From IMG/VR virus record IMGVR_UViG_3300009703_004110, positions 62,001 through 126,000 of that record: a stretch of DNA of 64,000 nt; one strand, 5' to 3'. Made by a program: the position numbers and the translations under genes. Of the stretch, positions 1 to 33,590 are shown one piece after another. The notes beneath the pieces are model-generated. The model searched no databases. It saw only the letters and a program-made list of their open reading frames with translations, and was not told where the DNA came from. Numbering within the stretch: the first letter of the stretch is position 1; each line of letters starts with the position of its first letter.

Positions 1-265
1 TAATAACCACCATATCAAGGCTATCTAATATTTTCTTTTTTTGCTCAAAAGTATAAACCAGATGGTCATTAGTTCCGCGTATCCAGACATTAGTCTTTCT
101 TCCATAATCGCGTCTAAATTTTTTATTTAACGAAAAATCATTAAATCTTATTATTAGATCATGACTATCTATTTTGTGCCCATGACGTTGACCAATTTCG
201 CACGGGCTATTTCCCACGATACAATAATCTTTACGTTTTGAGAATAATTTCTCTATATTTGACAT
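1..265 (-). CDS. GT29 (eukaryote-type sialyltransferase-like) glycosyltransferase, 3'-truncated by window edge; absent from ORF track
   Basis: Manual translation of the minus strand from ATG at 265 (in-frame ATGs also at 307/313): MSNIEKLFSKRKDYCIVGNSPCEIGQRHGHKIDSHDLIIRFNDFSLNKKFRRDYGRKTNVWIRG..., open to base 1. This matches sialylmotif L (CxxVGNS...G..ID.HD.(V/I)IR.N...DVG.KT). Confidence 0.8.
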   Translation of the reverse strand, partial: MSNIEKLFSKRKDYCIVGNSPCEIGQRHGHKIDSHDLIIRFNDFSLNKKFRRDYGRKTNVWIRGTNDHLVYTFEQKKKILDSLDMVVI

Positions 266-322
266 CCGCGGCCCCCACAAGTATTTTGTACTGCAGACTA
301 TAATCATGCTCATTTCAAATAC

Positions 323-2667: not shown

Positions 2668-3693
2668 CTAAGTATTTTCTTTTATAGACATTTTCTTCTT
2701 TCTCTTCTCAATTTTTGATGCTTGAGAGCTTTTCCTGATTGCCTTAAATAATCTTTTGTGATTTTTTACCAAGAAATCAAATGCATGACCAGACTCTATT
2801 TCTGTAATTTCAAATTGGCAATAAGCAAGATGATACAATAAAGGCTCTCTATCTGGATAGATAGGATACTCTATATATCTATAGTCATGAACGGCTATAC
2901 CTTGCGCAGGGCTTATTTTTTCTGTAAATATAGGCACACCCTCGATGATCGCCTCTATTGAAGTCGCACTAGCCGGGGCTACACATGCCCAAGCACCCTT
3001 TAAATCAACTTGAATTGGTCTATCAATAGAGCTGCTTAGGACTTCCGCATTAGATATGCCCTTTACGGCTCTGTAGATTGGCCTTATATCCGTTCCTCCT
3101 GGCTTTGGTCTTACTCTGATTGGTCTATCAGTATTCGCTCTGATAATTTTCATAGTATTCTTTAGCCAGTTTGGCTTCATTCCCATTGCTCCAGAAAAAA
3201 ATCCAGTTGGAGGGCAGACTAGGACGTACTCACCTTCGGTTTTCCACGGCTTAAGCTTTATATTGAATTTCTCAAAGCGATCTGCCGGTCTTCTCTCTAT
3301 CTTGGTTGGATGAATCCCATTGGCTACTATTCTAAAGCTTGGAGGATTTCCAGAATGAACACCCTTCCATCTATAACCTCTATCAAAATATGCATGGTCT
3401 ACATAAAGTAAATCACCAGCACCATCTTGTAAGCATGGCTTAACAATCTTGTGAATAGTATCTTTACCAAAAGCTACAGATAGCCCTGGATATATCTGGT
3501 CTACATCTTGAGACGCATATAAATGCCCATACCCTCTGGATGTATCAACTAGTTTAAGCATGACATATCGCGGGAATAATTTATGCCTATCCATATAAAA
3601 GTTGATATTAAAACGAGACTCGTCCCTATCGCTAGTTTCTTTTGCTACTTTAGCGACCCTCTCTATCCAGCCCGGCTCTAATCTCCATTTCAT
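2668..3693 (-). CDS. KpsS/KpsC (Capsule_synth)-like GT-B glycosyltransferase, paralogue 1
   Basis: Shares with the other four paralogues: YV(D/E)xxYF, VLVCPP, RPIRVRPKP, SIEAIIEGVPIF, YPDREPLLYHLAYCQF. Confidence 0.55.
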   Translation of the reverse strand: MKWRLEPGWIERVAKVAKETSDRDESRFNINFYMDRHKLFPRYVMLKLVDTSRGYGHLYASQDVDQIYPGLSVAFGKDTIHKIVKPCLQDGAGDLLYVDHAYFDRGYRWKGVHSGNPPSFRIVANGIHPTKIERRPADRFEKFNIKLKPWKTEGEYVLVCPPTGFFSGAMGMKPNWLKNTMKIIRANTDRPIRVRPKPGGTDIRPIYRAVKGISNAEVLSSSIDRPIQVDLKGAWACVAPASATSIEAIIEGVPIFTEKISPAQGIAVHDYRYIEYPIYPDREPLLYHLAYCQFEITEIESGHAFDFLVKNHKRLFKAIRKSSQASKIEKRKKKMSIKENT

Positions 3694-3694
3694 A

Positions 3695-4684
3695 TTATGC
3701 AGGACCCATTATAAAGTCTTTTCCGGCCCTCTCTAAAACTTTGTAACCGAAGGTTTTAATGATATACTTTTTTGTTTCATTATTTATTCTGCCCTCTAAC
3801 TCTAGTTCAACTATCATGATTGGCTGGCATCTTTTGATTGTCTCTGTAGCACCTTTAATAACTGCATCTTCAAAACCTTGTACATCTATTTTGATAAGAT
3901 CTACATTTTTAAGCTTGAAGCTGTCAAGCGTTCTTACCGCTGTACCAGTTCCTTTGGTTGCGTATGTATTTCCACTATTTCCAGCTTCAATATTTAAAAA
4001 TACCTCGCCCTCTTCGCTTCCTAGGGCGATATTGTGACATATAAGGTCTGGGCAGTTTTTGATGAAGCATTCATAACTCTCGGCTGACGGCTCGAATGCC
4101 ACCACTCTTTCAAAATGCTCAGACATCGCCTTGGAGTAAAACCCAACATGTCCTCCAATATCTACGGACGTGTTTCTGCCCGATAAATATTTTAGAACCT
4201 TTACGTAGGTATGGTATTGATATCTATCCGTATCTCTTGGAAAATGGTCGTCATCTTTTGGAAGTGCCATCTCACTTGGCCTGCGCTTACTTGCTATCAT
4301 AAAGACTCTTTCGCTATTATTTAGAAAGGTATCTATTCTCCAGCGATGCTGAAAGTGTCGCGCAAAGACGCGCTCATTTTTTAAAAACCTGCTGCTTGGC
4401 ACCTTGGAGTCTATAAGAATAGTATCAGCAACCTTTGGAAGATTTTCGATGATCTTTCTTATATCCACATCCCTGTTTCTTTCTAAGAATTTAGAAACAA
4501 TAACTAGGTCAAAAGAGTGAGCGTCCAGACTTAGAGCCTCAGATGGTGACACGAACCTAACAGAAGCTGTCGGGAAAAATTTACGTAGATGCATCATAAG
4601 ATCACCAGTTTTATTTCCATAAACTCCGATTGTCTCAAACCCGTAACCACGTAAAGAGCGTTTAATTTGTTTCAAATTATGCAT
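3695..4684 (-). CDS. FkbM-family methyltransferase with an extra N-terminal Rossmann-like domain
   Basis: SVDIGGHVGFYS...VVAFEP...IALG...LDSFKL.NVDLIKIDVQGFE..VIKGA; N-domain contains SFDLVIVSKFLE. Confidence 0.8.
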   Translation of the reverse strand: MHNLKQIKRSLRGYGFETIGVYGNKTGDLMMHLRKFFPTASVRFVSPSEALSLDAHSFDLVIVSKFLERNRDVDIRKIIENLPKVADTILIDSKVPSSRFLKNERVFARHFQHRWRIDTFLNNSERVFMIASKRRPSEMALPKDDDHFPRDTDRYQYHTYVKVLKYLSGRNTSVDIGGHVGFYSKAMSEHFERVVAFEPSAESYECFIKNCPDLICHNIALGSEEGEVFLNIEAGNSGNTYATKGTGTAVRTLDSFKLKNVDLIKIDVQGFEDAVIKGATETIKRCQPIMIVELELEGRINNETKKYIIKTFGYKVLERAGKDFIMGPA

Positions 4685-5540
4685 CTAATATTCTCCAAAT
4701 CTTTGGTGACTTCATTTCATGAACAGTAAATTGTCCATAGGATAAGTGTCTCATCCACATTTCCCTATTTGGATAAACAGGGTCATTTATTTTTGACAGA
4801 CGCTTTAAGCCCATTGGCCTAGAAGCATTAGGCCCAAGTGTAAATACCGGAATGCCGTGCATTACCGCCTCAATGCCGGCTACGCTATTATATGTTACCA
4901 TAGCAAAAACATCATTGTCAAAATCATCCTGGATTATGTTTTCAGTCAGTCTAAGGGTTCTAACTCTAGGTTTCAACCTTACTCTGATCTCTTTATCAGT
5001 ATTTTTCTTGAGCCTTTTGACGATTTTTTTTGTCCATACTTCAGCATCAATATTAAAATAGTGAGCGGACTTTAAGGATGGGGGACAGATTAAAATTGTT
5101 CCGCCTTTCTTCTTCCACGGAAGAAGAATCTTATTCCAGTCAACGCCTTGGTGCTTATATATAGTCTTTTGTGCCAGTTTATATCTATCATTGGGACGTG
5201 GTATAATCTTGTCAAATTGCACATCATTTTTAACAATTCTATGGAATAGCTTTCCTGTAGTAAGAATCGGCTTACCCTTTGGATCTGTATAATACTTACT
5301 AAGATTCCCAAAGTAACCGGTCTCTACATAATAATAGTCGATACCGTATTCCAAAGCTAAATGCATAACTCTTCTGTCACGAAGCCCTCTAACTAAAATC
5401 TTAGAGCCTCTATATTTTTCAATATTATTCATGAAGTCTTTTTTGACCATGATTTCTGCATCACAAGACTTGGCAAACTCACTAAGAATGCTGTCTCCTG
5501 GCCTAAAATAAAACGATCTATTCTTCATATCATTTTTCAT
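4677..5540 (-). CDS. KpsS/KpsC-like glycosyltransferase, paralogue 2
   Basis: YYYVETGYF, ILICPPS, IRVRLKP, TYNSVAGIEAVMHGIPVF, YPNREMWMRHLSYGQFT. Confidence 0.6.
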   Translation of the reverse strand: MKNDMKNRSFYFRPGDSILSEFAKSCDAEIMVKKDFMNNIEKYRGSKILVRGLRDRRVMHLALEYGIDYYYVETGYFGNLSKYYTDPKGKPILTTGKLFHRIVKNDVQFDKIIPRPNDRYKLAQKTIYKHQGVDWNKILLPWKKKGGTILICPPSLKSAHYFNIDAEVWTKKIVKRLKKNTDKEIRVRLKPRVRTLRLTENIIQDDFDNDVFAMVTYNSVAGIEAVMHGIPVFTLGPNASRPMGLKRLSKINDPVYPNREMWMRHLSYGQFTVHEMKSPKIWRILDA

Positions 5541-6357
5541 TTACAATCCCCAGGCGTTTATGAAGCCCCTTATCGTGTCGGAAGTATTCGGCTAGCATGC
5601 CTCTTTCTATTACATGTGATTGGCTTCTGCGCTTATTCGAATAATTCGATACTAGATCATTACCCGTTATACCTTCTCTCTCTTTCATTTCAAGAACTAC
5701 ATTGCCAAACATGCCGCCGTCGTCCCACATCATGTATCTTCTAAAGACTTTATTTTTATACTTATCGATCCAGCAATTCAGAACTCGTCGACCTGTTCTG
5801 TCCGTCCGAAAGCCTATAAAACCAGACTCCACTCCGAGGCCCTTCTTGGGCCTCTCACTTCCCCAGTGATAGAAAAATGCCTTTCCGCCAAAAGCTTTAT
5901 CCATGAGCCTTGGTGTTAGGTTTTTAGTTACTTTGGCATCCGCATCTAAAAAAACTATGGCATCATATTGATTTCCATAGTGACTCATTGCATAATCTAA
6001 AGTTACAATTTTTCTAAACCATCCTGCCGCTCTAAAGTTCCACGGCAAAAAAGCTTGAGGCACCTTCTTCCTGTCAGCTCTTCCTCCCATTTCTGGCGGA
6101 ATAACATCAGAGTTTTCTTTTAGCCACTTGACCAGAAATGGATTTCTGGTCATATTGTATGCTTTAATTCTGTGTATATGTTTCTCTCGAATTTTTCGAG
6201 ACTCCATATATGCTGGCTTCATTGCATTATATTTAAAACCTTCATAACACAATAGGAGATCGCCCTCAGATTCGCTCTTGAAAAAAGAGTTGATCATATC
6301 TTTCGCGGACGCTTTCCAGATACGATGGTTGAAGGTGGTTACATATAATACATTCAT
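5530..6357 (-). CDS. GT-A fold glycosyltransferase (DxD)
   Basis: FRKIV...IVFLDADA...VESGFIGF...WDDGG...HDKG. Start revised to ATG 6357 (GAGG SD). Confidence 0.65.
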   Translation of the reverse strand: MNVLYVTTFNHRIWKASAKDMINSFFKSESEGDLLLCYEGFKYNAMKPAYMESRKIREKHIHRIKAYNMTRNPFLVKWLKENSDVIPPEMGGRADRKKVPQAFLPWNFRAAGWFRKIVTLDYAMSHYGNQYDAIVFLDADAKVTKNLTPRLMDKAFGGKAFFYHWGSERPKKGLGVESGFIGFRTDRTGRRVLNCWIDKYKNKVFRRYMMWDDGGMFGNVVLEMKEREGITGNDLVSNYSNKRRSQSHVIERGMLAEYFRHDKGLHKRLGIVNEK

Positions 6358-6370
6358 AAATACCTCTTTA

Positions 6371-6378
6371 TATTTATA
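6371..6378 (-). promoter_or_regulatory. Possible T4-late-like promoter TATAAATA in the divergent gap
   Basis: Exact TATAAATA on the minus strand 13 nt before ATG 6357; the genome is AT-rich, so this is weak evidence. Confidence 0.25.
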
Positions 6379-6431
6379 TACTTGCATAGTAATATAGTGA
6401 CAAATGAAAAGTTAGAGATGGGGTTTTCGAA

Positions 6432-7454
6432 ATGAAAGTTGGTATATTTTTGGCGACTACTAGTGGTAAGGCAAAGCAAGATATTATGCGAAGTTTTGCC
6501 GCTGGTGTCAAAGCCTCTGGTGACCTTGCCAAAATATTTGATAAGCGAGAATATCGCAAGTGTGATTTAGCTTTAATATTTGGATTTTATAATGACCAAA
6601 ACATGGGAGCAATACAGTCCTTTAGAAAAAAAGTTTATGAAACCCACGAAAGTCGTGGAAGAAAATGTTTGTTTGTCGATGCAGATTTTTTGAGATTTGC
6701 AGGAAAAATTAGAGCCGAAGCTCCAGATGATCCAACTCAGCACCTTAGAATCTCTCACGGTTCCATCTTTCCAAGTCGCGCTAATTACTTCAATGAGTTT
6801 TCCGACAATAGACGATGGAAAGAATTAAGAAGAAGAAAGCATATAGTTGTAAAAGATTACCGAACCGATGGGGATCATATCCTAATGTTACTCAATAGCA
6901 GTAGCAAATATGGCAGAGGCTGGTCTGCTCGCGGAACAGATAGTATGTACTGGCTGCAGAAAAGTTTATCCGAAATTCGTCAGTACACAGATCGTCCTAT
7001 TCGAGTTAGATTTCATCCTAATGAAAAGAAGGATTTAAGAGAGTCTAGACCAGTCGAGGCCTTACAGAAAATGTATGGAAATATTACCTTTTCTGGTGGC
7101 GTTGTCGGATCTAATAAAGCGATACTTCCACCCAGAACTTTGATAGAGGATTGTGATAACGCATGGGCCGCCGTAGTCCATACGACCTCTGCTTCCGTTA
7201 TACCAATAATAAATGGGATTCCTGTCTTTACAAGTAGTCGAGACTGTATTGCTTTTCCTATCGCAACACATCGTTTATCAAAAATAGAGAAGCCGAGCCT
7301 GCCAAAACGAGAGCAATGGTTTTATGATCTATCCTATAGTCTATGGAACGTAGAAGAATTGAGGGATGGAGTTGCGTGGAAAAGAATTAAAAGCAGAATA
7401 AACTCTAGCGGAGACTATTCTAAAGCAAAAGCTAAAAAGCTTGGGATTATTTGA
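6432..7454 (+). CDS. KpsS/KpsC-like glycosyltransferase, paralogue 3 (only substantial plus-strand gene)
   Basis: 340 aa; DRPIRVRFHP, SASVIPIINGIPVF, PKREQWFYDLSYSLW..EELRDG.AW match the minus-strand paralogues; 8-nt convergent stop overlap at 7447-7454. Confidence 0.7.
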   Translation: MKVGIFLATTSGKAKQDIMRSFAAGVKASGDLAKIFDKREYRKCDLALIFGFYNDQNMGAIQSFRKKVYETHESRGRKCLFVDADFLRFAGKIRAEAPDDPTQHLRISHGSIFPSRANYFNEFSDNRRWKELRRRKHIVVKDYRTDGDHILMLLNSSSKYGRGWSARGTDSMYWLQKSLSEIRQYTDRPIRVRFHPNEKKDLRESRPVEALQKMYGNITFSGGVVGSNKAILPPRTLIEDCDNAWAAVVHTTSASVIPIINGIPVFTSSRDCIAFPIATHRLSKIEKPSLPKREQWFYDLSYSLWNVEELRDGVAWKRIKSRINSSGDYSKAKAKKLGII

Positions 7455-8085
7455 TATTCTGATTTACAAAGACCCATCCGTTTCTATTTAAGAATGAATC
7501 ATTTATCTTTTTAACAATCACATCGTCACCTTTAAAGATATAATTAAATCCGCCGAGACCTTTCTTCACTCTCATAGTCGAGTTCGCTCTGACTCCCTGT
7601 GTTAATATTCCAGACACTTTAAAGTTATTTTCTGAAAAGATGCTATTCCAATAATTAAAGTGTCTTTCATTAACATGATGGTATCCGCCCTGCCCTGGTC
7701 TTGCGTGCGTCACCACTAGATACTTGCAAGCCGAAAACGTTGCCATGAAGTTGCCTATATATTTCTCTTCGACATGTTCCAGAAACTCAACTGACCATCC
7801 TATATCAAAGTATCCCGATCTTGGTAAACTTGGTATATTTTTGGCCCTAAGCGGCCCAACAGCGTAGTCATGTATATGCACTTCAGGCTTATCTCTGAAG
7901 GTTGGGTCTCCATCCACACCCTGAACTATGAGTCCTAATTTCTTGGCCATTTCAATTTGCCCACCCGGACCACAGCCTATGTCCAAAAAGGTCTTGGCTC
8001 CGACTTCATTCTTTAGGTACTCTAGTGCCCCGTAGTCACTCCATGTTTTATTGTTATGTCCACCTAGATGTTCAGCTCGTCCCAT
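7447..8085 (-). CDS. Class I SAM-dependent methyltransferase
   Basis: FLDIGCGPGG; FDIGWSVEFLEHVEE; PGQGGYHHVNE. Confidence 0.8.
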   Translation of the reverse strand: MGRAEHLGGHNNKTWSDYGALEYLKNEVGAKTFLDIGCGPGGQIEMAKKLGLIVQGVDGDPTFRDKPEVHIHDYAVGPLRAKNIPSLPRSGYFDIGWSVEFLEHVEEKYIGNFMATFSACKYLVVTHARPGQGGYHHVNERHFNYWNSIFSENNFKVSGILTQGVRANSTMRVKKGLGGFNYIFKGDDVIVKKINDSFLNRNGWVFVNQNIK

Positions 8086-8965
8086 TTAAATGCTCCCAGA
8101 ACAGCCCTTGGCTGAGTTCTTCTAATGTCCACTGCTTGTATGCTAGATCGTAAAGCCATTGCGTTCTATCTGGCGTAATAGGGTCATTAATTTTTGTTAA
8201 GTCTGTGTTTGCTATAGGATACGCCATTGAGCCTATATCGCAAGCAAACACAGGAATTCCTTGTATTGCCGCCTCTACGGCTGTATTTGAATTAAATACC
8301 ACAACAGCTTTAGCTCTTTTTAAATCCATTGCAAGCGAGTTCTGAGACCATTCTAGCCACTTTGGTGTAGCAACCTCATACCACTCCTTTCTTCTTCTAA
8401 AAGAGGGGTGTGGTCTAAATACAAGCTTCCTATGCGTATTTTCAGACACTGTCTTAATAGTGTTGCTAAGCCAGTCCATATAGCCCTGCACGGATGCTGG
8501 ACGCTTTTTATATCCAGTGTTCAAATGCTGAACATTGCTATCCCACGGCACTTGTCCGCAGATTAAAATATTCTTTCCTTTGACCTTCCAATCTCGCACA
8601 TCAACATCCAGTTTTTCAAATCTATCTTTAGGACAATTTTTAACGACAAAGTCTGCACGACCATTAATTCCATTCCATCCAACAGAGTGATAAATACTTC
8701 TATTTATAAAGCCTCTTTCGAAGGTCAAAACTTTGTGCCCTAGCGAGTTTTGCGTATCATACATTTCTTTTCTGAAGCTTCCTACTTTAGACATTCTTTT
8801 GTGAAATCCGTATAGTGCGGCAATTTCTGATGGACGATATTCATCCTCATATAATACCTGATAATCTTCACCAACAGCATCTAACCCGGCTATTCCGGCC
8901 TCTAAAGTCGCTCTGACAATTCTATTTGTTCCTCTTCTAATATAGACGATGATTTTGGTTTCCAT
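8072..8965 (-). CDS. KpsS/KpsC-like (GT107/GT99-type, candidate beta-Kdo) transferase, paralogue 4
   Basis: GQVPWDSN (QxxxD), VFRPHP (HP motif), FNSNTAVEAAIQGIPVF. Start revised to ATG 8965 (METKII). Confidence 0.65.
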   Translation of the reverse strand: METKIIVYIRRGTNRIVRATLEAGIAGLDAVGEDYQVLYEDEYRPSEIAALYGFHKRMSKVGSFRKEMYDTQNSLGHKVLTFERGFINRSIYHSVGWNGINGRADFVVKNCPKDRFEKLDVDVRDWKVKGKNILICGQVPWDSNVQHLNTGYKKRPASVQGYMDWLSNTIKTVSENTHRKLVFRPHPSFRRRKEWYEVATPKWLEWSQNSLAMDLKRAKAVVVFNSNTAVEAAIQGIPVFACDIGSMAYPIANTDLTKINDPITPDRTQWLYDLAYKQWTLEELSQGLFWEHLNGTS

Positions 8966-8975
8966 TTTTAAATCC

Positions 8976-9710
8976 CTAAGTACTTTGACGGTCAAAAAAT
9001 TCTCTCAAATAGGTCTTCTGAATCTTTCTAAACTCTTTTCTTTTCTTGCTTCGTCCTTTGCCAGCCCAAATTTTACTTTCTGCGCTGTAGTTCCAGTCAA
9101 TGTATTTTTTAGATAGATTAAAAAAGACTATATCCTCTCTAAGCTTAAAATATTCATAAGTCTTATTAAGAGCCTTCTGATCTGAGTACCAATTTAAAAT
9201 ATTTTCCTCTCTGATTCTTTTACAGTATTCATCCAAGAATTCTAAAGTAACCGGCCTGTTATTTAAGAAGATTATTCCGCTCAAAATATTTCCTATATCT
9301 CTCTCTTTTGGTCTGAAATGAAACATAATATGACATTTATCTTGCAGATCGAATGCACCATCTATATTATCTATTAGAACGGAATCTGCATCTATATATA
9401 CCAGATTATCGAGCTTATCTACAGTCAATAACTCTCGTATGACCTCTCCTCTAATATTTGCACTATAACAGATTACCTCACTTTTTCCCGCCCACTTAAC
9501 CGGGTCTGTGCTGAGGCTCCAGTCGTTCCTCTCTCTTACCACTACCGGCATATTTCCTACTTGCAAGGTTATCTCGTCTATAAATTCTTTTGAAGCATTA
9601 ATTAAATACAAATATATATTGACATCGGCTTGATGCTTTAAAAGTGAAGCTATAAGCGCCCTTCCGTAATTACCATAAGACTCTGTAATTATAATTAAAA
9701 TATTCTTCAC
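8976..9710 (-). CDS. GT-A fold glycosyltransferase (GT8/GT77-like)
   Basis: LVYIDADS, LSGIIF, WYSDQKAL, YIDW...IWAGKG. Confidence 0.7.
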   Translation of the reverse strand: MKNILIIITESYGNYGRALIASLLKHQADVNIYLYLINASKEFIDEITLQVGNMPVVVRERNDWSLSTDPVKWAGKSEVICYSANIRGEVIRELLTVDKLDNLVYIDADSVLIDNIDGAFDLQDKCHIMFHFRPKERDIGNILSGIIFLNNRPVTLEFLDEYCKRIREENILNWYSDQKALNKTYEYFKLREDIVFFNLSKKYIDWNYSAESKIWAGKGRSKKRKEFRKIQKTYLREFFDRQST

Positions 9711-11374
9711 AGCACTTCCGCTAAATGCCTCCAGGCACGTCCTCGACTAATCTCCTTCAAAGTCCATTGCGAATAGGCCATGCCGGCCGTCCACTTCTTT
9801 AAATTCGGATATGCTGGATAATTAATGCTTCGAATATTATGAACTGATGCAGAGTATGCTATACTTTTATTGCTAATCATGAATACTGGGACACCAGCAA
9901 CTAAAGAATCTACGGCTATTTCGGAGCCGTAAGTTACGACGGCATAAGCATTTTCTAAGTCTTTTGTAAGACTGTGATATGACCATCTCATATTATGCGG
10001 AATTGTATCTTTAAATAATTCTTTATCAGAAAAGCCTGGGGCTGGCCTGAATACTATCTCCATTCTAGTATTCTTTTTTAGAATACGTATAGTTGCTTTA
10101 AGCCAAGATAAATAATTATTTATGGCCACATTTTGATCTTCTATATTTTCGTGAAGATCTGTCATATTATAATCCCATGGAATATCACCACATAATAAAA
10201 TATATTTTCCACTTTTACACCATGGTTCTAGTCTTACATTTAATTGTATACGCCTATCTCCAGCTGGTTTTCTAATATTAAAATTATCTACTCCGTTTGG
10301 GTTATACCAACCAGCAGAATGATAAGAATTATTTTTATGAAAGCCTTTATCAAAGATAAGTGTTTTTCCATTATAAAGCTGTTGAGAGTCGCAAATAAAT
10401 TTCTTTGATCTTCCTGCCTTGGTTGTTATATTTGGATGACCATATATAACGGCTATTTTAGATGGGCGATATTCTGACTCGCTCGCTATTGCGACCTCTT
10501 GTCCGTGCCTTTCTATACCACTTTTTGCCGCATTTAAAACATCTATTGATGATGCCGTTCTTTTGCGTTTTGCCACAGCAGTACTTTCGTGATACACGAT
10601 TATTTTAGATGTTAATAATTTGTTTTTCTCTGGGCTGATAAATAACATATCGAATGCGTTTCGATAACTTTCTTGAGCGATTACAAAAGGACCCTTTTTC
10701 TTGCTTCTGCCTTTGCCAACCCATAAGCATGACTTATGGCTGTACTTCCAGTCTATATATGTTTTACTTATATTTCCATAACTTTCTGGATAGTTATGAT
10801 ATAAATAAGATAGAGACATTTGATCTGCAAACCAAGTTAATATTCCATTGTCATTAACTTTGTCATTATATAAGTTTACAAAATCTCTTGCTTCTTGATT
10901 ATTAACATAAAACATTATGCCGCTTAAAACCTTGATTAGACCATCTTTAGGCCTAGCGTGAAATGACACATTGTACTTTTTATATCTTTCAAATAGGCCT
11001 TCTATGCTTTTTGTTATTATAGAATCTGCGTCTATATACAATAAAGAGTCAATATCTTCTGTCTCAAGCAGCTCTTTGATTATGCTAACTCGAACATTCG
11101 CACTAAAGGCCATAAGCTCGCTATATATCAAGCCACCAGCTCTTTTATCTAGTTCGTCACTTAACTCTGGACGATCTATGTTTCTGATGTTAATGGGGTA
11201 TCCAGAAGTTTTATATTTCAACTCTTCTGTAACATCTTTAGGTGTGTTAATAAGATATAAATATATATTAAGTCCCTTTTCATGAATGAAAAAAGAAGCT
11301 AATAATGCCTTAGTGTAGTCTAAATAAGATTCTGATGAAACAATTAGAATGTTTTTTTTTATCTCACTCTCCAT
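9707..11374 (-). CDS. Fusion of GT-A glycosyltransferase and KpsS/KpsC-like domain (paralogue 5)
   Basis: N-half aligns by eye with 8976-9710 (NIYLYLIN, SAN.R, YIDADS, YIDW, GKGRSKK); C-half aligns with 8072-8965 (EYRPS.IA..YG, GK.IL.CG..PWD, FRP.P, G(I/V)PVF). Start revised to ATG 11374. Confidence 0.7.
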   Translation of the reverse strand: MESEIKKNILIVSSESYLDYTKALLASFFIHEKGLNIYLYLINTPKDVTEELKYKTSGYPINIRNIDRPELSDELDKRAGGLIYSELMAFSANVRVSIIKELLETEDIDSLLYIDADSIITKSIEGLFERYKKYNVSFHARPKDGLIKVLSGIMFYVNNQEARDFVNLYNDKVNDNGILTWFADQMSLSYLYHNYPESYGNISKTYIDWKYSHKSCLWVGKGRSKKKGPFVIAQESYRNAFDMLFISPEKNKLLTSKIIVYHESTAVAKRKRTASSIDVLNAAKSGIERHGQEVAIASESEYRPSKIAVIYGHPNITTKAGRSKKFICDSQQLYNGKTLIFDKGFHKNNSYHSAGWYNPNGVDNFNIRKPAGDRRIQLNVRLEPWCKSGKYILLCGDIPWDYNMTDLHENIEDQNVAINNYLSWLKATIRILKKNTRMEIVFRPAPGFSDKELFKDTIPHNMRWSYHSLTKDLENAYAVVTYGSEIAVDSLVAGVPVFMISNKSIAYSASVHNIRSINYPAYPNLKKWTAGMAYSQWTLKEISRGRAWRHLAEVL

Positions 11375-12167
11375 AGCCAAACTCACGCAGTCTGAGCCAT
11401 TCATCACCGTACTTCCAGTCTATTCCTCGTTTTGGTTCCCATATATCAAACCAAGGACCACCATTAGTGAAGTGAACGTTCTTAGCTTCTAAGCTTTCGG
11501 GAGAATGGCCTGGTAACCAATTCCACTCCTCTGGCAATTCACCTATATCTTTATCCTCTAGCCACTTCAGATTATGTAACCAAGTTCCTGGCTTAGTGCT
11601 AACATCAGCCGCTGTTAAATTGTGATGAGCCTGATGGCCGCAATTCCAGAGCATAACACTGGACCAGTTTTTTCTACTATAAAATGTTTGTGGGCATCCG
11701 TAGAGCTTGACAGCAACTTTGCCACCATCCTCAAACTGATGCTTAACACACTGTAAAGCTGGCGCGTCTGCAGTAGCGTAGCGATCAAATATCTCACACG
11801 GGTCGCTGCGAAAATACATATCGTTATCCATAAACAAAGCAAACCCTTCGTGCTGGTTTAAAAAAGGAACTAAAAATCTTGAAAAACTGAACTCTGTCGA
11901 ATACGGCTTACCATCGAACCTGTCTACCATATGGTCTACTTTATTTTGCCCCCATACAGTGGATTCTACATGCGGAACCCTAAAATATAATCCACTTCTT
12001 CTTAAGCTTGTCTGATTTAAGGTCACAATATTAAGCGGCCTAGAGGCGTGTCTTAGGATTGAGTCTGTTAAAACTTCAGAGGCATGATGATCTCTTGGGT
12101 CATAACCGATGTATATTGTATCTAGCTTTCTAACTTCTTTATCATTCTGATTAATGACTTTTCTCAT
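11364..12167 (-). CDS. GT8-like glycosyltransferase
   Basis: IYIGYDPRD, STEFSFSRFLVP, ALFMDNDMYF, RKNWSSVMLWNCGH, WNWL, HFTNGGPW. Confidence 0.75.
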   Translation of the reverse strand: MRKVINQNDKEVRKLDTIYIGYDPRDHHASEVLTDSILRHASRPLNIVTLNQTSLRRSGLYFRVPHVESTVWGQNKVDHMVDRFDGKPYSTEFSFSRFLVPFLNQHEGFALFMDNDMYFRSDPCEIFDRYATADAPALQCVKHQFEDGGKVAVKLYGCPQTFYSRKNWSSVMLWNCGHQAHHNLTAADVSTKPGTWLHNLKWLEDKDIGELPEEWNWLPGHSPESLEAKNVHFTNGGPWFDIWEPKRGIDWKYGDEWLRLREFGYGE

Positions 12168-12954
12168 CAGCAATTCTCCTTACTATAGACTCTATAATTT
12201 CGAGTGTTTGCGCGGGATCACGAGTTTTATATGCAAAGCCCGTAGGTTTAATAGCGTCATATAAAGCAGCATCATTACCAAATTCTTCGCATCTATCACC
12301 TACGAACCATATTTTTTCATAGTCATCGAAATGCTTTAGAACATATGTTTTATCCCAGCCTGACGGATAAATATCAAACGAGGTATTTCCACCTAGTACC
12401 GCCGTTACTCTGCTATCTATCCTTTTAAGCCTTCTATTTAACCTTCCCAAAAAACGAACTCTAAGGCCGGTCTCTTGATCTAATTCTCTAAACTGTTCTC
12501 GTTGATCTGTATTAGCATTTCTACCGATCGGGCACCAATTTATCATTGAGCCTCTAAGCTCTAAAAAATTACCCGTTAAGGGGATTAAAAGCCCTTTCTC
12601 TTTGACAAGACATTTTTGTAAGTCAAAAATAATGGCCATTATTCCGGCCATTACTTCAGCACCTAAATGCTCTTCCATATTATTGAAATAAATCTCTTCA
12701 TAGTCGTCGATCTTATCTTTATGCTTATAAACCTTTGTGCCATTACATGGTAAAATTATAATTCTATTTAAAAGCATATCTTCAAATACTTGCGGCATTT
12801 GCTCTTGCAAGTAATTATAATCGCTTCCTGAAACTACTCCCACTTCTGCGACCCAAAGCAACTCCATTAATGCTTTAGCTATTTCATCTCCCATTTGGCC
12901 GCGCGCAGGTGTTAATGTGCCGTCCATGTCGAACAGCACCAGATGATCGGACAT
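12151..12954 (-). CDS. Phosphomannomutase, eukaryote-type HAD family (PMM2/Sec53-like)
   Basis: LFDMDGTLTPAR, VSGSD, ELRGSMINWCPIGRNA, GGNTSFDIYP.GWDKTY.L, FVGD....GND..LY. GGAG SD before ATG 12954. Confidence 0.9.
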   Translation of the reverse strand: MSDHLVLFDMDGTLTPARGQMGDEIAKALMELLWVAEVGVVSGSDYNYLQEQMPQVFEDMLLNRIIILPCNGTKVYKHKDKIDDYEEIYFNNMEEHLGAEVMAGIMAIIFDLQKCLVKEKGLLIPLTGNFLELRGSMINWCPIGRNANTDQREQFRELDQETGLRVRFLGRLNRRLKRIDSRVTAVLGGNTSFDIYPSGWDKTYVLKHFDDYEKIWFVGDRCEEFGNDAALYDAIKPTGFAYKTRDPAQTLEIIESIVRRIADEKSH

Positions 12955-12955
12955 C

Positions 12956-13426
12956 TTAACTCCTAGATTTAGCAACCAGTTCACTACTGCTCTGAACCTT
13001 TCCACCGCCAACATTCCACAACATGTAGATGCCAAGTTCATTACAGACCTTTACTTCTGGTACGTTATCAGATTTTCTGTCGCCACCATTGGCAAAGAAA
13101 TCTGGACATAGTCTTCTTAGTGCTTCACAAACTGAACCATCCGAGTCATCCACATGGCTCACATGCACTACGCCTCTTATCGCAGATAATATTTCTGCTC
13201 TCTCCTCAAAAGACATAAATACATAACCTTTCTTTCTCATTAGCCACTCATCACTGTTGGCCACAACAATAACTTCCTTGCCACCCTTAGCGGCATCTAA
13301 AATCATTTGAACGTGGCCAACGTGTATTGGGTCAAATCCACCGGAAACAACTACCGAACTCTGTTCGTACCCGTCATAAGTCTTTTTGGTTTCCCAACTT
13401 CCATCATCATTTAACGGCATCATCAT
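12956..13426 (-). CDS. HxGH-family cytidylyl/adenylyltransferase (TagD / RfaE domain II-like)
   Basis: VVVSGGFDPIHVGH, VVANSDEWL.RKKG, FANGGDR, GGGKVQSSS. Confidence 0.8.
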   Translation of the reverse strand: MMMPLNDDGSWETKKTYDGYEQSSVVVSGGFDPIHVGHVQMILDAAKGGKEVIVVANSDEWLMRKKGYVFMSFEERAEILSAIRGVVHVSHVDDSDGSVCEALRRLCPDFFANGGDRKSDNVPEVKVCNELGIYMLWNVGGGKVQSSSELVAKSRS

Positions 13427-14000
13427 CTCCTCTGGCTACTTGCCCTAAGTATCCACCATGATGTCTCTTAGCGTACTCCTCTTTCGTAAATTTTTTCTTT
13501 TCCATCACGACCATAGCTAGTACGTCGCCAATAACTAACATCACTGTTGTTGAGCATGTTGGGGCCATGCCTAGTGGGCATACCTCCGGGTATCCTCCGG
13601 TTTCAATCACTACATCAGATTGTACTGCCAGCGGCGCATCTTTATTAGCAGTGACTGTGATTAGCTTTAAATCACACAGTTGCTTTGCCAAATAAGTAGA
13701 CTCAATAATCTCTCGTGTCTTGCCAGAGTTAGAAAAAGCAATCATTAGATCGCCCTCTGCTACCATTCCAAGATCACCATGTTGAGCTTCGCACGGATGA
13801 AGATAAAAGGCAGGCGTCCCTGTTGACGCGAAAGTAGCGGACACTTTTCTAGCTATTAGCCCCGCCTTCCCCATTCCTATAAAGACAAGCTTGCCTTTAC
13901 ACTTTAGTATCTCCTCTACTGCTTCATCAATTCCGGTCAAAGGAATGGCTTTAATTGCATTAACCTCTTCCTTCAGCACCTCTTTAGCTGTTCTTCGCAT
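13407..14000 (-). CDS. kdsD: Arabinose-5-phosphate isomerase, SIS domain only (no CBS pair)
   Basis: FIGMGKAGLIARKVSATFASTGTPAFYLHPCEAQHGDLG; SNSGKT.E; APT.STT; HHGGYLG; ends at 197 aa. Confidence 0.85.
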   Translation of the reverse strand: MRRTAKEVLKEEVNAIKAIPLTGIDEAVEEILKCKGKLVFIGMGKAGLIARKVSATFASTGTPAFYLHPCEAQHGDLGMVAEGDLMIAFSNSGKTREIIESTYLAKQLCDLKLITVTANKDAPLAVQSDVVIETGGYPEVCPLGMAPTCSTTVMLVIGDVLAMVVMEKKKFTKEEYAKRHHGGYLGQVARGDDDAVK

Positions 14001-14748
14001 CTATCATACCTCGCATTATTGCTCTTGCTTTATCTAAGTCTTTCTGTGTGTCAACTGAAAATTTCTCAGAATCATTACAGTTGGTTGTTCTTATAGTAAT
14101 CTTATTAAATAGCCAAGTAAGCTGCTCTAATTTTTCAGTTTCTTCTAGATATGACATTGGTAAATTTTTAATGATATCTAAAGTAGGACGTGTAAAGCCA
14201 TATGTGCCTACATGTTGGGCATACGGATTATATAGTACCCGATCTCGGCAATGCGGTATTGGACTTCTGCTAAAATATATTGCATCATTATTCTTATCTA
14301 GAACTACTTTAGCTATAGTATCATCGTTTATAGCGTTTTCTGATAGCTCTGTTACAAGAGTAGTGACGGCTATTTCTTTTGGGTCTAAAGATCGCAAGAA
14401 GTCTACTGAATCTTGTACAATTTTTAATGATATTAGAGGCTGGTCTCCTTGGATGTTCAAAAAGTAATCATATCCTGGGTATAATTCCGCCACTTCTGCG
14501 ACCCGTAAAGTGCCGGATATATGATCATGACTTGTCATTACTACAGTTCCACCAAATCCCTCTACTGCTTTAAAAATTCTGATATCATCGGTTGCAACCA
14601 TAGTCGTTGGCAGAATTTTAATTACTCGCTCATAAACCCATTGTATCATAGGCCTGCCACAAATATCCGCCAGAGGCTTCCCTGGCAGCCTGCTAGAATC
14701 ATATCTAGCAGGAATTACTCCAAGCACATTTGCTGACATATTACTCAT
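13984..14748 (-). CDS. kdsB: CMP-Kdo synthetase (3-deoxy-manno-octulosonate cytidylyltransferase)
   Basis: IPARYDSSRLPGKPLADI.G.PMIQWV, SGT.RVAEV, NIQGDQP, YFSRSPIP, H.G.Y, E.LEQL.WL, SVDT..DL. Confidence 0.92.
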   Translation of the reverse strand: MSNMSANVLGVIPARYDSSRLPGKPLADICGRPMIQWVYERVIKILPTTMVATDDIRIFKAVEGFGGTVVMTSHDHISGTLRVAEVAELYPGYDYFLNIQGDQPLISLKIVQDSVDFLRSLDPKEIAVTTLVTELSENAINDDTIAKVVLDKNNDAIYFSRSPIPHCRDRVLYNPYAQHVGTYGFTRPTLDIIKNLPMSYLEETEKLEQLTWLFNKITIRTTNCNDSEKFSVDTQKDLDKARAIMRGMIDAKNS

Positions 14749-15706
14749 CTTCTTCACACATCCAAAATGGGTTCATTCTAAATAGCCCGGTCATTGCGTC
14801 TCTGACAGTTCCGTCCTTCGCAATACCTCTGGCATGGAAGCCCCTTGTGTTAACAATAACCAAAGAATTCCCATCAATAGCCTCTGCGGTTATGGAATTT
14901 CTATAGCCCATTGCCTTGATTTCTTTAGCAGAAGCTCTAAAAGACCCCTCTCTAGTTCCCTTGTTTGATGATTTATATGCATCAATAATTAATTTCTGAG
15001 ACCACGCCAATCTTCCTGGAATACTTCTATGAGATCCTTTAACGTATCTTGTTGGTCCTTGCTCTAAAGTCATTGGGGCTAAATAAAACCAAAATTTAAT
15101 AGTTGGATGGAAAGTATCTTCGTGTATTTGCTTTTGTATATCATTATCTCTATGAACTAAGCGCTCTACTCGCTTGTCATGGAATACGAAGTCGTCTCGT
15201 CCATTGGCCATTCTAACTAGATCAATTAACTCTGGATTATTAAAGAAGCTGAAAAGCTCTTCGTGATGTTTATTTAATCGCAAATATGAGTGCTTCCAGT
15301 TATCAAATCTATCCCTTGGTTGCTCCGCTATTAATCTATAAAATTTCTTTCTAATTCTCTTAAGCTCTTTGCCTTTAATAAAGTCAGGAATTATAACCAT
15401 CCCATCTTCATAAAAGGACCTGATGTAATCATTATGTAGATTGTATGTCATCTCTCGATCATATATAGCTTCCGCCAGGACTACTCTGAAAATATAGAGC
15501 CCCTTTCTATTAAGCTCTTCATCTTTTAAAACTGGAAAGCGTCGAAATTTTTTCTCCTTACTGAAAATCACACTTCTCTCCGCTTCCGGCAGTGAATATA
15601 TAATATCTAGTATTCCAGAGAAATCTTTTTCTCCAAATACTGAGCAAACCTCCTCTTCGTCATATTCATATTCACTAAGAACTCTTTCTATATATTCTCT
15701 CCTCAT
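14741..15706 (-). CDS. Fe(II)/2-oxoglutarate dioxygenase, PhyH-like
   Basis: IHEDTF (HxD), FWFYL, GPTRYVKGSH, distal NTRGFHARG. Confidence 0.75.
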   Translation of the reverse strand: MRREYIERVLSEYEYDEEEVCSVFGEKDFSGILDIIYSLPEAERSVIFSKEKKFRRFPVLKDEELNRKGLYIFRVVLAEAIYDREMTYNLHNDYIRSFYEDGMVIIPDFIKGKELKRIRKKFYRLIAEQPRDRFDNWKHSYLRLNKHHEELFSFFNNPELIDLVRMANGRDDFVFHDKRVERLVHRDNDIQKQIHEDTFHPTIKFWFYLAPMTLEQGPTRYVKGSHRSIPGRLAWSQKLIIDAYKSSNKGTREGSFRASAKEIKAMGYRNSITAEAIDGNSLVIVNTRGFHARGIAKDGTVRDAMTGLFRMNPFWMCEEDE

Positions 15707-16502: not shown

Positions 16503-17162
16503 TTACACCTGAAAAATTTTATAACTTGAGATATCTTTATACTTGTATGAACCACCACAGTCCTCGTTAACCTCTGGTAACGAATCCAAAAGAACGATGC
16601 CTCGTGCGGCCTGCTCTGGCGGCATATACATGTTCCAACCGAGGACTGTTAGCTCTTCCATACTATCATGCGGTATTCTTTCGTCTCTTCCTTCGTATCT
16701 GGCTTGTTTGAACCACTTCACAGCATCAGCATCATCGGTCAAAATCATCCCGCCCTTTGTTATTGGTAGAATTTTCTTAATATGAAAAGATAGGCATTGA
16801 TATGTGCCTGGGATGTACATTCCTTTAGTAAACCTTGTTGCCGAATCAATAATTGGATATGGGTTTAGTTGATATAAGCCCCACCATTCTAAATCTGTAA
16901 ACTTTGGCTTGCAGCCGGTATGAATGATTACCCCTGGAACAGAAACGTATGTCTTACCCGGCACCTCTATTTCTCCAGATGCACCAAGATATTTCATTGA
17001 TAAAAATAGGGCGTTAGTGCAACTATCGACTGATACTGCATATTTGCTTCCGGCATATGCCGCTACTTTCTGTTCAAAGATATCAACTATATCCCAAGGA
17101 TCATTAACTTCATAGCCTTCTTTGAGCAAAATTTCTTTTGCTACTTCTAAATCAGAATACAT
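16503..17162 (-). CDS. Short (219 aa) DegT/DnrJ/EryC1/StrS-family PLP enzyme
   Basis: FEQKVAAYAGSKYAVSVDSCTNALFL, IIDSA, SFHIKKILPITKGGMIL, GWNMYM; lacks the usual C-terminal domain. Confidence 0.75.
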   Translation of the reverse strand: MYSDLEVAKEILLKEGYEVNDPWDIVDIFEQKVAAYAGSKYAVSVDSCTNALFLSMKYLGASGEIEVPGKTYVSVPGVIIHTGCKPKFTDLEWWGLYQLNPYPIIDSATRFTKGMYIPGTYQCLSFHIKKILPITKGGMILTDDADAVKWFKQARYEGRDERIPHDSMEELTVLGWNMYMPPEQAARGIVLLDSLPEVNEDCGGSYKYKDISSYKIFQV

Positions 17163-21428: not shown

Positions 21429-22136
21429 TTAAATCCATTTAAAAACATAGTCAAACTCTACGTTTCCAACACATGTTGCGCCCAAATTCTCCAGAAATTT
21501 TCCAGAAGCAAAAGGCTCTTGCTTTATTTTACGCGCCCTTAACTTTTCTTCTGGCAATTGTTCTATCACAATTACTGGCTTACTTATTTTAATAGTTTTT
21601 ATTGCTCCATGTAATACGTCAAGCTCATATCCATCTACATCGATTTTTATATAATCAACATTTCTAAGCTTAAAATGATCTAGTGGCAGAATCGGCATTC
21701 TTCCCTCTAAAATATCTCCACTGTACTTGATTGTTTTGGTAATAGAGTTACCTTGCATTGAGCCTATAAAACCATAATGTGCGCCTAAGCCACATGGATA
21801 TATTGTCACATTCGAAGTATCTACATTTTTTGCCAATAATGGCAGCCACTTCCATCTTGGTTCAAATGCAAAGACATGATCAAATTCTTGTCCAAGGTGT
21901 CTGCACCACTCTCCAAATCTGGCTCCAATGTCCAGCGCTATTCCTCTGCCTTCACAATGATCCAGACTAAGCTGCCTTTGCTTTATTTGACCGGGACCCC
22001 TACAGACGTCTGCCTTAATATTCGTCTTTTTAAGATAGGCCGATTGCTTGTAAAGATCTTGCTTGGTGATGATCTGATCTCTCATATAAGTATAAGATCC
22101 GAGATCTTCTATCGTATAGGGATTCACATTAAACAT
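21429..22136 (-). CDS. FkbM-family methyltransferase
   Basis: ALDIGARFGEW, VFAFEP, LDHFKL.NVDYIKIDVDGYE..VLHGA. Confidence 0.8.
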   Translation of the reverse strand: MFNVNPYTIEDLGSYTYMRDQIITKQDLYKQSAYLKKTNIKADVCRGPGQIKQRQLSLDHCEGRGIALDIGARFGEWCRHLGQEFDHVFAFEPRWKWLPLLAKNVDTSNVTIYPCGLGAHYGFIGSMQGNSITKTIKYSGDILEGRMPILPLDHFKLRNVDYIKIDVDGYELDVLHGAIKTIKISKPVIVIEQLPEEKLRARKIKQEPFASGKFLENLGATCVGNVEFDYVFKWI

Positions 22137-33185: not shown

Positions 33186-33590
33186 TTATTCCCTGTGTAT
33201 TGTTTTATGGCAGTCTTGGCATAGGGTTATTCCGTTCCAAAGTTTAAGCGCCAGCTCAGGGTGCTTCGCTTTCTCTCGAATATGATGCGCTTCAATATTT
33301 TCTATTGCATCACATTCGATGCATTTATTATTGTCTCTTTTCTTAACGGCATTTGCCCATTTGTATAAGTCCCATCCGGACAGTTGAGCCTTTTCTCTAA
33401 ACTTCTTTTTAGATAGTCGAGATGGATACGGGTTACGCTTTTGATAGTCGATAGAACGCTGAATTTCTTTTTCGCGATTATTGTTATATACACAAGGGGA
33501 GGCAAAATTTACTAGGGAAGTGCGAACTGGCAGGGAAACGGTCCTTGAACAAATGTTCCTGTTGCTGTTGTTCCAGCTATGAAGAAGCAC
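33186..33590 (-). mobile_element. HNH endonuclease (134 aa), start overlapping the upstream structural gene
   Basis: W.NAVKKRDNNKCIEC...IEAHHI...P.LAL...NGITLC..CH..IH; GTG 33590 with GAGGA 6 nt upstream. Confidence 0.65.

Follow-up and report, generated by a model that had tools for sequence, protein, structure and literature searches.

Five KpsC-like paralogues with divergent catalytic motifs in the glycan island of a marine jumbo phage: a predicted Kdo transferase and its conserved variants

The stretch of DNA analysed here (the window) covers 64,000 nucleotides, bases 62,001-126,000 of the 332,270-bp virus record IMGVR_UViG_3300009703_004110 (completeness 99% by CheckV), the genome of a marine tailed jumbo phage. 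[quoted passage not shown] Each copy has kept or lost the catalytic motifs of those enzymes in its own way and, the fusion protein 9707 apart, its motif state is conserved in orthologues. One copy, 8072, is predicted to transfer Kdo with retention, three others may act on their donors by another mechanism, and the fifth is probably not catalytic; together they would serve a soluble pathway for an acidic glycan. This reading as a whole is given a probability of roughly 0.55.

Four of the genes lie on the minus strand (2668-3693, 4677-5540, 8072-8965 and 9707-11374), and 6432-7454 is the sole plus-strand gene of this region; each is named here by its first coordinate, and in the two-module product of 9707 (555 aa) only the C-terminal half belongs to the family. 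A preliminary description, made from the letters alone, had proposed that the five are homologous, and all are present as described. The ten pairwise BLASTP comparisons are all significant (E 9e-15 to 9e-65), the other four align over their full length to 8072 at 25-36% identity, and a genome-wide profile search recovered exactly these five copies and no more. The blocks G(I/V)P(V/I)F and, near the C-terminus, P.R..W...(A/S)Y.Q(W/F) are seen in every copy. Starts follow the database gene calls: 8072 (297 aa; P0001) begins with the ATG at 8965, its longest open reading frame (ORF) running to a TTG at 8995, and the call for 9707 (9707-11374; P0121) is likewise not the longest TTG/GTG ORF.

In characterised enzymes, the equivalent of Gln148 is the ligand of the Kdo carboxylate, Asp152 is the covalent nucleophile, His196 is a phosphate ligand, and the Arg of a (K/R)xHP motif binds the cytosine of cytidine monophosphate (CMP) (PMC9587256; PMC12887879; see also PMC10148158 for active-site roles). 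Translation located the motifs of every copy in the states that had been described. Only 8072 keeps both QVPWDS (GQVPWDS, 8537-8557) and RPHP (8405-8416); it also has GIPVF at 8246-8260 and a conserved Glu within TFERGF (8708-8725). The C-terminal half of 9707 reads DIPWDY (GDIPWDY, 10169-10189) and RPAP (10037-10048). Copies 2668 (CPPTG, 3202-3216; RPKP, 3100-3111) and 4677 (CPPSL, 5073-5087; RLKP, 4968-4979) belong to a CPP(S/T) plus R.KP clade. Copy 6432, of an NS..RGW plus RFHP clade, has the segment LLNSSSKYGRGW (6888-6923), which includes NSSSKYGRGW, and RFHP at 7008-7019; it retains the HP motif, has Asn where the Gln that binds the carboxylate would be, and lacks the nucleophile Asp. 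Thus the QxxxD motif of retaining beta-Kdo glycosyltransferases (GTs) is found in 8072 only, being absent from 2668 (CPPTG), 4677 (CPPSL) and 6432 (NSSSK..), and in the C-half of 9707 (DIPWD) the Asp is kept and the Gln lost. The (K/R)xHP motif is present in 8072 (RPHP) and 6432 (RFHP) and altered in 2668 (RPKP), 4677 (RLKP) and the C-half of 9707 (RPAP), its Arg being kept in all five. Because only 8072 keeps the full catalytic kit, the other four probably work differently or not at all. Two copies carry basic C-terminal extensions that are absent from most homologues and could bind membranes or nucleic acids: a long KRKKK-rich basic helix in 2668 (window 2668-2790; model residues 317-340) and a Lys-rich tail in 6432 (window 7380-7454).

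Among sequence libraries, the Pfam model Capsule_synth (PF05159) matches 4677 only (20.8 bits, cut-off 20; 32 residues, aa 207-238), with no match at E <= 0.1 for 8072, 2668, 6432 or 9707 and weak matches to 11 of 115 homologues. The Pfam GT99 N-terminal model (PF21912, Glyco_transf_99) matches none of the five and two of the 115 (E about 1e-3). The fusion 9707 has weak Pfam matches to GT8 and DUF6716, NCBIfam gives only sub-threshold matches for the five (LIC12162 family, 22 bits, for 8072), and PHROGs has no family for any of them. Searched against PDB sequences, a profile of the five alone and one of the CPP..KP subfamily alone returned only noise; of the profiles tried, only that of the 115-sequence family reached KpsC (6mgd, E 8.6e-5; 6mgc, E 7e-4) and WbbB (5fa0, E 2.5e-3). 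In that alignment, the family's cgQvpwDaS falls on QVESDAS and QTFNDMS (D160) of KpsC and on QVEDDSN (D232) of WbbB, and RpHP falls on KPHP, KVHP and RAHP. The Asp of QVPWD is therefore aligned with the nucleophile, the residue mutated in the D160N (KpsC) and D232N/C (WbbB) entries, and RPHP with the HP motif, as had been proposed.

Structure prediction agrees with this placement. The AlphaFold model of 8072 (mean predicted local distance difference test, pLDDT, 95.6; predicted template modelling score, pTM, 0.92) has as its top 28 Foldseek matches in PDB only KpsC, WbbB or KrkA (E 4e-8 to 1e-5). Against the Swiss-Prot part of the AlphaFold database, its top eight matches are all Capsule_synth proteins (LpsZ, FixF, KpsS, LipB, KpsC and LipA), with a thousandfold drop-off in E-value to the matches that follow. 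For the 2668 model (pLDDT 93.4), the full-length ranking is the same (KpsC 12.9, WbbB 11.4, KrkA 10.7), and it holds in an exhaustive, Foldseek-independent search of 48,161 chains, with a smaller margin over generic GT-B C-domains. A TagF-like (CDP-glycerol, that is, cytidine diphosphate-linked) fold, considered for the CPP..KP type, was not among the matches of the exhaustive structure search. For 6432, the structural neighbours in the ESM Atlas are viral clusters (TM-score 0.83). The models thus show the unusual modified GT-B architecture of KpsC/KpsS (GT107), WbbB (GT99) and KrkA (GT140), and 8072 and 2668 match retaining beta-Kdo transferases first. Since the predicted fold is as expected and the Asp matches the nucleophile position (by profile, not in three dimensions), neither point tells against the preliminary description. 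Its term 'KpsS/KpsC-like' holds for the fold and fails for the sequence family, which is separate and unannotated. In addition, an acidic residue at alignment column 93 is 86-98% conserved per clade (Glu in 8072 and 4677; Asp in 2668, 6432 and 9707) and ends a beta-strand in the N-domain of the 8072 model. From its position, it may be the counterpart of the general-base Glu that known enzymes carry in the N-terminal domain or linker (WbbB Glu158, KpsC Glu66, KrkA Glu102).

The five belong to a separate, very large and uncharacterised family that is mostly phage-borne. An exhaustive profile search found 4,931 clusters (50% identity) at E <= 1e-3 and 3,597 at E <= 1e-10, almost all unnamed. In IMG/VR, 117 relatives were confirmed and 80 loci fetched; the 237 family ORFs of these loci and 268 fetched homologues were aligned to the family model. 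Co-occurrence counts below refer to these 80 viral loci, which come from related phages and are not independent. At least two members lie within 20 kb of each other in 64 of the loci, three being the commonest number and seven the maximum, and the family is usually deployed as cassettes of 3-7 paralogues. The recurrent order is a HIGH-family nucleotidyltransferase, a DxD protein like that at 11364 of the window, a PP/K(R) member, a Q..G/H member, one other gene and a Q..S/H member. CheckV puts most family-bearing contigs at 9-25% completeness, from which genome sizes of about 350 kb follow, and related scaffolds come from TARA Oceans and Joint Genome Institute (JGI) marine metagenomes. In the ESM Atlas, 2668 and 6432 have as neighbours many clusters, each with 50-190 proteins and 94-100% viral. 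Membership is not confined to viruses, however, so that 'viral GT subfamily', as first suggested, is right for a mostly viral, unannotated group and wrong if taken strictly: chromosomes of Planctomycetota carry members in glycan clusters. A nine-sequence alignment of the canonical type, searched against genome contigs, found 11 full-length close homologues, mostly from Planctomycetota, and in the complete chromosome of Pirellulaceae SH449 the canonical gene lies amid methyltransferases, GT4s, a GT8-like gene, a weak polysialyltransferase-like gene and an ATP-binding cassette (ABC) exporter.

Several motif types recur across the alignment: canonical CGQxPxD(x)S + RPHP, (C/A)PP(S/T) + R.(K/R)P, NS..RGW + RFHP, LQR(D/N)GGWSM + R.HPG and CGQH.KS.QW + FRPHPR. 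In a FastTree phylogeny of 395 sequences, 8072 and the fusion C-half fall together in one small clade inside a canonical clade of 191, the PP/K clade includes 2668 and 4677, and 6432 falls in a six-member NS/H clade nested within the Q..G/H clade. Common to all clades is a core of the column 93 acid, Arg125, Trp175, Arg194, Ser236, Gly246, Pro248, Arg277, Trp280, Glu293 and Gly297. By column statistics, the clade-variable positions are three only, Gln148, Asp152 and His196. In the CPP(S/T) clade (25 sequences), C-P-P is invariant and Lys nearly so, and in the CPP..KP and NS..HP clades Arg194, Ser236, Gly246, Pro248 and Glu293 stand at 90-100%.

Orthologues in two other phage scaffolds, L086 and L088, were compared with the window's own genome locus (L090). 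Syntenic orthologues keep the motif state of 8072 (78% and 60% identity) and of 2668 (71% and 43%), and both the motif and the opposite orientation of 6432 (73% and 43%); the L086 orthologue of 4677 (73%) likewise keeps its motif. Between the window and L086, the nonsynonymous divergence (dN) is 0.15-0.23 for these four genes and 0.19-0.23 for the three noncanonical ones; synonymous sites are saturated (proportion of differences, pS, about 0.8), so that dN is given and no dN/dS. Values this low despite saturated synonymous sites indicate strong purifying selection on the four. Because the motifs persist in orthologues at 43-73% identity, 2668/4677 and 6432 represent old conserved clades rather than local decay. 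They are found in many other phage contigs, and the earlier picture of one true enzyme with four local variants has to be given up.

The fifth copy behaves differently. Its N-half (about nt 10649-11356) is a GT8-like GT-A module with IDADS at 11021-11035, and its KpsC-like C-half (about nt 9707-10615) is 36% identical to 8072 (E 9e-65). A free-standing GT8-like GT-A gene at 8976-9710 (minus strand), whose relation to the fusion the preliminary description had not recorded, is a paralogue of this N-half (BLASTP to fusion residues 18-253, 41% over 242 aa, E 3e-56) and has a 63% identical orthologue in L086. By this relation, 8072-11374 is a tandem duplicate of a [GT-A]+[KpsC-like] unit, with one copy fused and the other split (8976-9710 plus 8072). 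The fusion C-half has lost Gln148, His196, Arg277 and Asn235. Its syntenic orthologue in L086 reads CGQRPLG/RPHP, a motif state that differs from the window's. Identity between the two is 33% with a dN of 0.69, against 53% and 0.37 for the N-half, and the C-half evolves about four times faster than the other four copies. It is best read as a recent derivative of the canonical clade that looks degenerate, either decaying or repurposed. A second, independent kind of GT-A::KpsC-like fusion beside GT8-like::canonical exists elsewhere: at L008:6406-8124 and L025:6244-7998, a DxD protein like that at 11364 (phrog_28018) is fused to a PP/K-type member (about 573 aa).

The paralogues lie in a glycan island of at least 50 kb that encodes a CMP-Kdo pathway and a CMP-nonulosonate-like pathway. 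The former comprises, all on the minus strand, a KdsD-like SIS isomerase (13407-14000; 177 bits, SIS domain only), the CMP-Kdo synthetase KdsB (13984-14757; NF003952, 257 bits with cut-off 193; TIGR00466, 175 bits with cut-off 155) and KdsA (22136-22909; NF003543, 339 bits with cut-off 242). KdsA, KdsB and the SIS gene are syntenic with the 8072 orthologues in L086 and L088. The latter includes, also on the minus strand, a PseF-like CMP-nonulosonate synthetase (22906-23574; 122 bits) and a NeuB-like synthase (23571-24428; 186 bits), both below cut-off, together with RfbH/PseC-like aminotransferases. One DegT/PseC-like ORF of 219 aa (16503-17162) matches only about the N-terminal quarter of aminotransferase models and may be a truncated or split gene. 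Other sugar-nucleotide enzymes of the island are GMD, an Fcl-like gene with GT10, a phosphomannomutase (PMM), a TagD/RfaE-II-like nucleotidyltransferase and UDP-glucose dehydrogenase; its transferases and modifying enzymes include several GT4 and GT2 genes, FkbM and other methyltransferases, and a GT29-like gene. This last encodes 228 aa with a match to the sialyl-motif region of Pfam GT29 (42 bits); it occupies window 2-313 on the minus strand (genome 61627-62313; L090:15627-16313) and L086 and L088 conserve it. A GT29 member is an unusual find in a phage, and this one is an alternative candidate for nonulosonate transfer.

Directly downstream of 8072 and overlapping its 3' end is an S-adenosylmethionine (SAM)-dependent methyltransferase gene (7447-8085, minus strand; Pfam Methyltransf_11). 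Its homologues occur in nine of the 80 loci, all nine of which carry a Q..D/H member (9 of the 13 such loci), suggesting that the canonical transferase and the methyltransferase form a conserved pair; in L091 and in Pirellulaceae, too, canonical homologues have methyltransferases beside them. The gene directly upstream of the fusion encodes an uncharacterised DxD, GT-A-like protein (11364-12173, minus strand; PHROGs phrog_28018, E 5e-49) that, with homologues in 57 loci, is a conserved cassette partner. A HIGH-superfamily nucleotidyltransferase resembling TagD and RfaE domain II (12956-13426, minus strand; Pfam CTP_transf_like; NCBIfam rfaE_dom_II, 60 bits, and g3p_cytidyltrns, 40 bits, both below cut-off) has homologues that head the cassette in 51 loci and could supply a second class of nucleotide-activated donor. 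The adjoining eukaryote-type PMM (12151-13041; Pfam PMM, 129 bits) overlaps it by 86 nt as listed, so that the PMM start probably lies further downstream. Between the two CPP..KP paralogues is an FkbM-family methyltransferase (3695-4684, minus strand; TIGR01444, 82 bits), with homologues in 40 loci. Adjoining 4677 is a 285-aa protein (5530-6387, minus strand) without a Pfam, NCBIfam or PHROG match, in whose translation an LDADA (DxD-like) motif was read; an L086 orthologue occupies the same position, and the protein may be another GT-A.

From its sequence, 8072 is rather likely to be a retaining transferase of Kdo or of a closely related ulosonic acid, since it keeps the Gln that binds the carboxylate, the nucleophile Asp with Ser after it, and R-x-H-P. 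It would take CMP-beta-Kdo made by the phage KdsD, KdsA and KdsB and transfer Kdo with retention through a covalent Asp152-Kdo intermediate, and the product may then be methylated by the linked methyltransferase. Copies 2668, 4677 and 6432 keep the nucleotide-binding core (Arg194, Ser236, Gly246-x-Pro248, Arg277 and Glu293); lacking the nucleophile, they cannot use double displacement. Inverting CMP-sialic acid transferases of GT38, GT52 and GT80 have an HP motif, no covalent nucleophile and a general base near the acceptor. The simplest reading of 6432 is that it may be a single-displacement (inverting) CMP-ulosonate transferase, comparable to the sialyltransferase-type ancestor that the literature proposes for this fold. 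The CPP..KP clade has Lys in place of His and keeps the cytosine-binding Arg; having lost Gln, Asp and His together, it points to a different donor class or mechanism and not simply to another CMP-sugar. More speculatively, 2668 and 4677 could use another cytidine- or nucleotide-activated donor, possibly a product of the HIGH-family nucleotidyltransferase. The fusion C-half probably performs no catalysis and would serve its GT8-like N-domain, for example in acceptor binding. Acting with over ten further soluble GTs, methyltransferases and sugar-nucleotide enzymes, the five would assemble a cytoplasmic acidic glycan whose target is perhaps virion proteins.

Several points weigh against this account. 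The equivalence of the Asp is drawn from a hidden Markov model alignment of about 110 residues (E 1e-4 to 1e-3), not from a three-dimensional superposition. The QxxxD Asp is not universal, for large Q..G/H and Q..S/H clades are without it, and such Asp-less members adjoin KdsA and KdsB in eight loci. Thus Kdo use need not track the Asp, the logic from motif to mechanism may be too simple, and variants without the Asp might still handle Kdo by another route. Since a nonulosonate is made in the island and KpsS1 of GT118 transfers pseudaminic acid (Pse), the sugar of 8072 could be a nonulosonate and not Kdo, and the GT29-like gene could instead account for nonulosonate transfer. The virion, perhaps the target, is suggested by gene neighbourhood only.

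How many of the five are enzymes bears directly on the proposed functions. Pseudo-glycosyltransferases keep the GT-B fold, lose catalytic and nucleotide-binding residues, evolve under relaxed constraint and have an active GT partner; GtfB and Asp1/Gap1 are partners of this type in the glycosylation of serine-rich-repeat proteins. That 8072 alone is an enzyme and the other four are dead scaffolds, acceptor-binding subunits or chaperones for partner GTs is rather unlikely on the present analysis. Such a role fits the fusion C-half well, and the preferred reading already treats that half so, but the CPP..KP and NS..HP clades have strictly conserved replacement motifs of their own, their nucleotide-binding residues stand at 90-100%, and their dN is 0.19-0.23; together, these suggest a working ligand site rather than a relic. 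It is more doubtful still that the whole family, 8072 included, handles no Kdo and transfers a nonulosonic acid or another CMP-sugar, the Kds genes serving another transferase or the host lipopolysaccharide (LPS). The NeuB-like and PseF-like pair and the aminotransferases of the same island would supply such a donor route, and KpsS1 shows that a QxxxD/HP scaffold can transfer Pse. KdsB also lies within 10 kb in only 1 of the 13 canonical-clade viral loci, although most viral contigs are 9-25% fragments and its absence there says little. Conversely, KdsD and KdsB lie 5 kb from 8072 with the synteny described above, among solved folds the nearest all belong to Kdo enzymes, the nonulosonate could be served by a GT29-like sialyltransferase homologue, and retaining Kdo-like GTs are not readily adapted to ulosonic acids with equatorial C5 substituents (PMC12887879). 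In 31 larger viral records, a comparison of family clade with CMP-sugar synthetase was uninformative, nearly all being such fragments.

A further alternative concerns the target of the glycan. The cluster might remodel the host surface (LPS, capsule or another envelope glycan) for superinfection exclusion or defence against grazing rather than decorate virions, and this is a real, if not the favoured, possibility. Clusters of this kind in large marine phages are usually read in this way (the 'cell wall synthesis and modification' clusters of cyanophages); KpsS and KpsC act on an inner-membrane lipid without being integral membrane proteins, 2668 and 6432 have basic tails, and the Pirellulaceae homologue sits in a cluster with an ABC exporter. 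Against this, no Bac_transf, WecA-type, ABC-2 or Wzy gene is found in the 332,270-bp genome, so that the initiating phosphoglycosyl transferase, flippase, polymerase and exporter are all missing, and no KpsMTED export partners were found. In the 50 kb around the locus, the KdsD-like SIS gene and KdsA each have a single hydrophobic stretch, and no other ORF has a predicted transmembrane helix. The island also abuts baseplate and giant fibre genes, and one canonical homologue is embedded in a head-morphogenesis module. In that case, on a 15.9-kb contig (L091, 1575-10451), the canonical member P0052 is found two genes downstream from the gene for the major head protein (phrog_283, E 2e-73), in a module that reads terminase, portal, MptE/Maf-like protein, scaffold and major head protein. 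Maf proteins add nonulosonates to flagellins, and by that analogy the head module of L091 may glycosylate the capsid. Because host machinery could still export the product, a host-surface role is a matter of target and not of enzymology, and it is compatible with the rest of the preferred explanation.

The remaining contents of the window give the setting of the island. Its genes are almost all on the minus strand (GC about 38%), and a Baseplate_J protein with giant fibre-like ORFs of 1,516 to 3,215 aa occupies 33.5-64 kb. Three giant ORFs that adjoin Baseplate_J (33512-38062, 1,516 aa; 38855-48502, 3,215 aa; 54058-60228, 2,056 aa) are candidate fibres and possible glycan acceptors; one of the three has a Pfam match, to Laminin_G_3 near the C-terminus of the 3,215-aa ORF. 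The glycan island and tail-fibre block are also interspersed with four free-standing homing-endonuclease genes: a NUMOD3/HNH-like gene between GMD and 2668 (1871-2620), LAGLIDADG genes at 26771-27634 and 38119-38853, and an HNH gene at 33186-33590. Upstream of the window, UDP-glucose dehydrogenase (L090:14420-15623; genome about 60.4-61.6 kb) is present as a 278-aa ORF followed by a 130-aa ORF, and its homologue in L086 (L086:18475-20367) is one 630-aa product with a LAGLIDADG-bearing intein, a difference that points to gain or loss of the intein or to a split gene. Among GT genes 12 kb upstream of the window there is also a TubZ/PhuZ-like tubulin gene (L090:3003-4424; genome about 49.0-50.4 kb). 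A cyanophage origin is unsupported, psbA being absent from the 332,270-bp genome and no tRNA being found in the window, and the 8.7-kb region found no counterpart by megablast among 50,697 phage records.

Retaining ulosonic-acid transferases with a covalent Asp-sugar intermediate are rare, and the literature on retaining Kdo transferases lists GT99, GT107, GT118 and GT140, four CAZy families that all serve bacterial capsules or O-antigens. The locus points to a fifth lineage on the KpsC scaffold, deep and mostly viral, with conserved sublineages that are without the nucleophile. This lineage is much larger (thousands of clusters) than the known families, is mostly phage-borne and has no annotated function; its sister clades, which swapped the nucleophile loop and kept the nucleotide pocket, offer a comparative series for a change of donor or stereochemistry. 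Tentatively, and as a proposal that may well prove wrong, a mainly phage-borne sister family of GT99, GT107, GT118 and GT140 would have repeatedly rebuilt its nucleophile loop, the conserved versions of which are QxPxD, CPP(S/T), NS..RGW, QR(D/N)GGW and QH.KS.QW. These loops would represent different chemistries on one CMP-binding core, and marine jumbo phages, deploying 3-7 of these enzymes as a cassette, would assemble a glycan with Kdo or another ulosonic acid wholly in the cytoplasm, plausibly on capsid or fibre proteins. If the loops do mark different chemistries, one core supports covalent retaining transfer, single displacement and possibly CDP- or other nucleoside diphosphate (NDP)-linked donors. 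More broadly, the locus suggests production of Kdo-containing glycans by abundant marine jumbo phages through soluble enzymes of their own, with a bearing on phage surface chemistry, host range, immune recognition and the annotation of very common 'hypothetical proteins'. The adduct-trapping assay already established for WbbB, KpsC and KrkA makes the proposal directly testable.

In the literature searched, no paper treats a phage KpsC-like family or its cassettes, DUF6716 or LIC12162, and in phage papers such islands figure only under the general heading of cell-wall-modification clusters. Among cellular enzymes, KpsC and KpsS (GT107; PF05159) are the retaining beta-Kdo transferases of the group 2 capsule linker and are 11-17% identical to the phage family. 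The phage proteins differ from them in their length of about 300 aa without an N-terminal extension, in the absence of KpsMTED, and in four copies that are without the nucleophile or, in the case of the C-half of 9707, keep the aligned Asp (DIPWD) but not the Gln. The N-terminal domain of WbbB from Raoultella terrigena (GT99) has a larger inserted linker domain and is about 400 aa, compared with about 300 in the phage family. KrkA (GT140), from the K13 capsule of E. coli, is a retaining Kdo transferase fused to a ribosyltransferase. Its motif Arg is replaced by Ser, whereas Arg194 is universal in the phage family, and it is a trimer, whereas the phage proteins are known here as sequences and monomer models. 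KpsS1 of Acinetobacter baumannii (GT118), a retaining pseudaminic acid transferase, is the precedent for nonulosonate transfer by an enzyme with this scaffold and these motifs. Unlike the phage variants, KpsS1 has retained the Asp, and with about 30% identity to E. coli KpsS it stands far nearer to GT107 than the phage family does; the structure-search matches include no solved structure of it. The clusters of the cyanophages S-SCSM2R, S-SCSM1 and P-SSM2 and the glycan clusters of jumbo phages resemble this island in their blocks of GTs, epimerases and HIGH-family nucleotidyltransferases, and that of S-SCSM2R has kdsA and kdsB as well. Reports on the cyanophage clusters recognise no KpsC-like family or paralogue cassettes. 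The present phage differs from them in having no psbA and in its larger island of at least 50 kb, which combines Kdo and nonulosonate pathways with a GT29-like gene.

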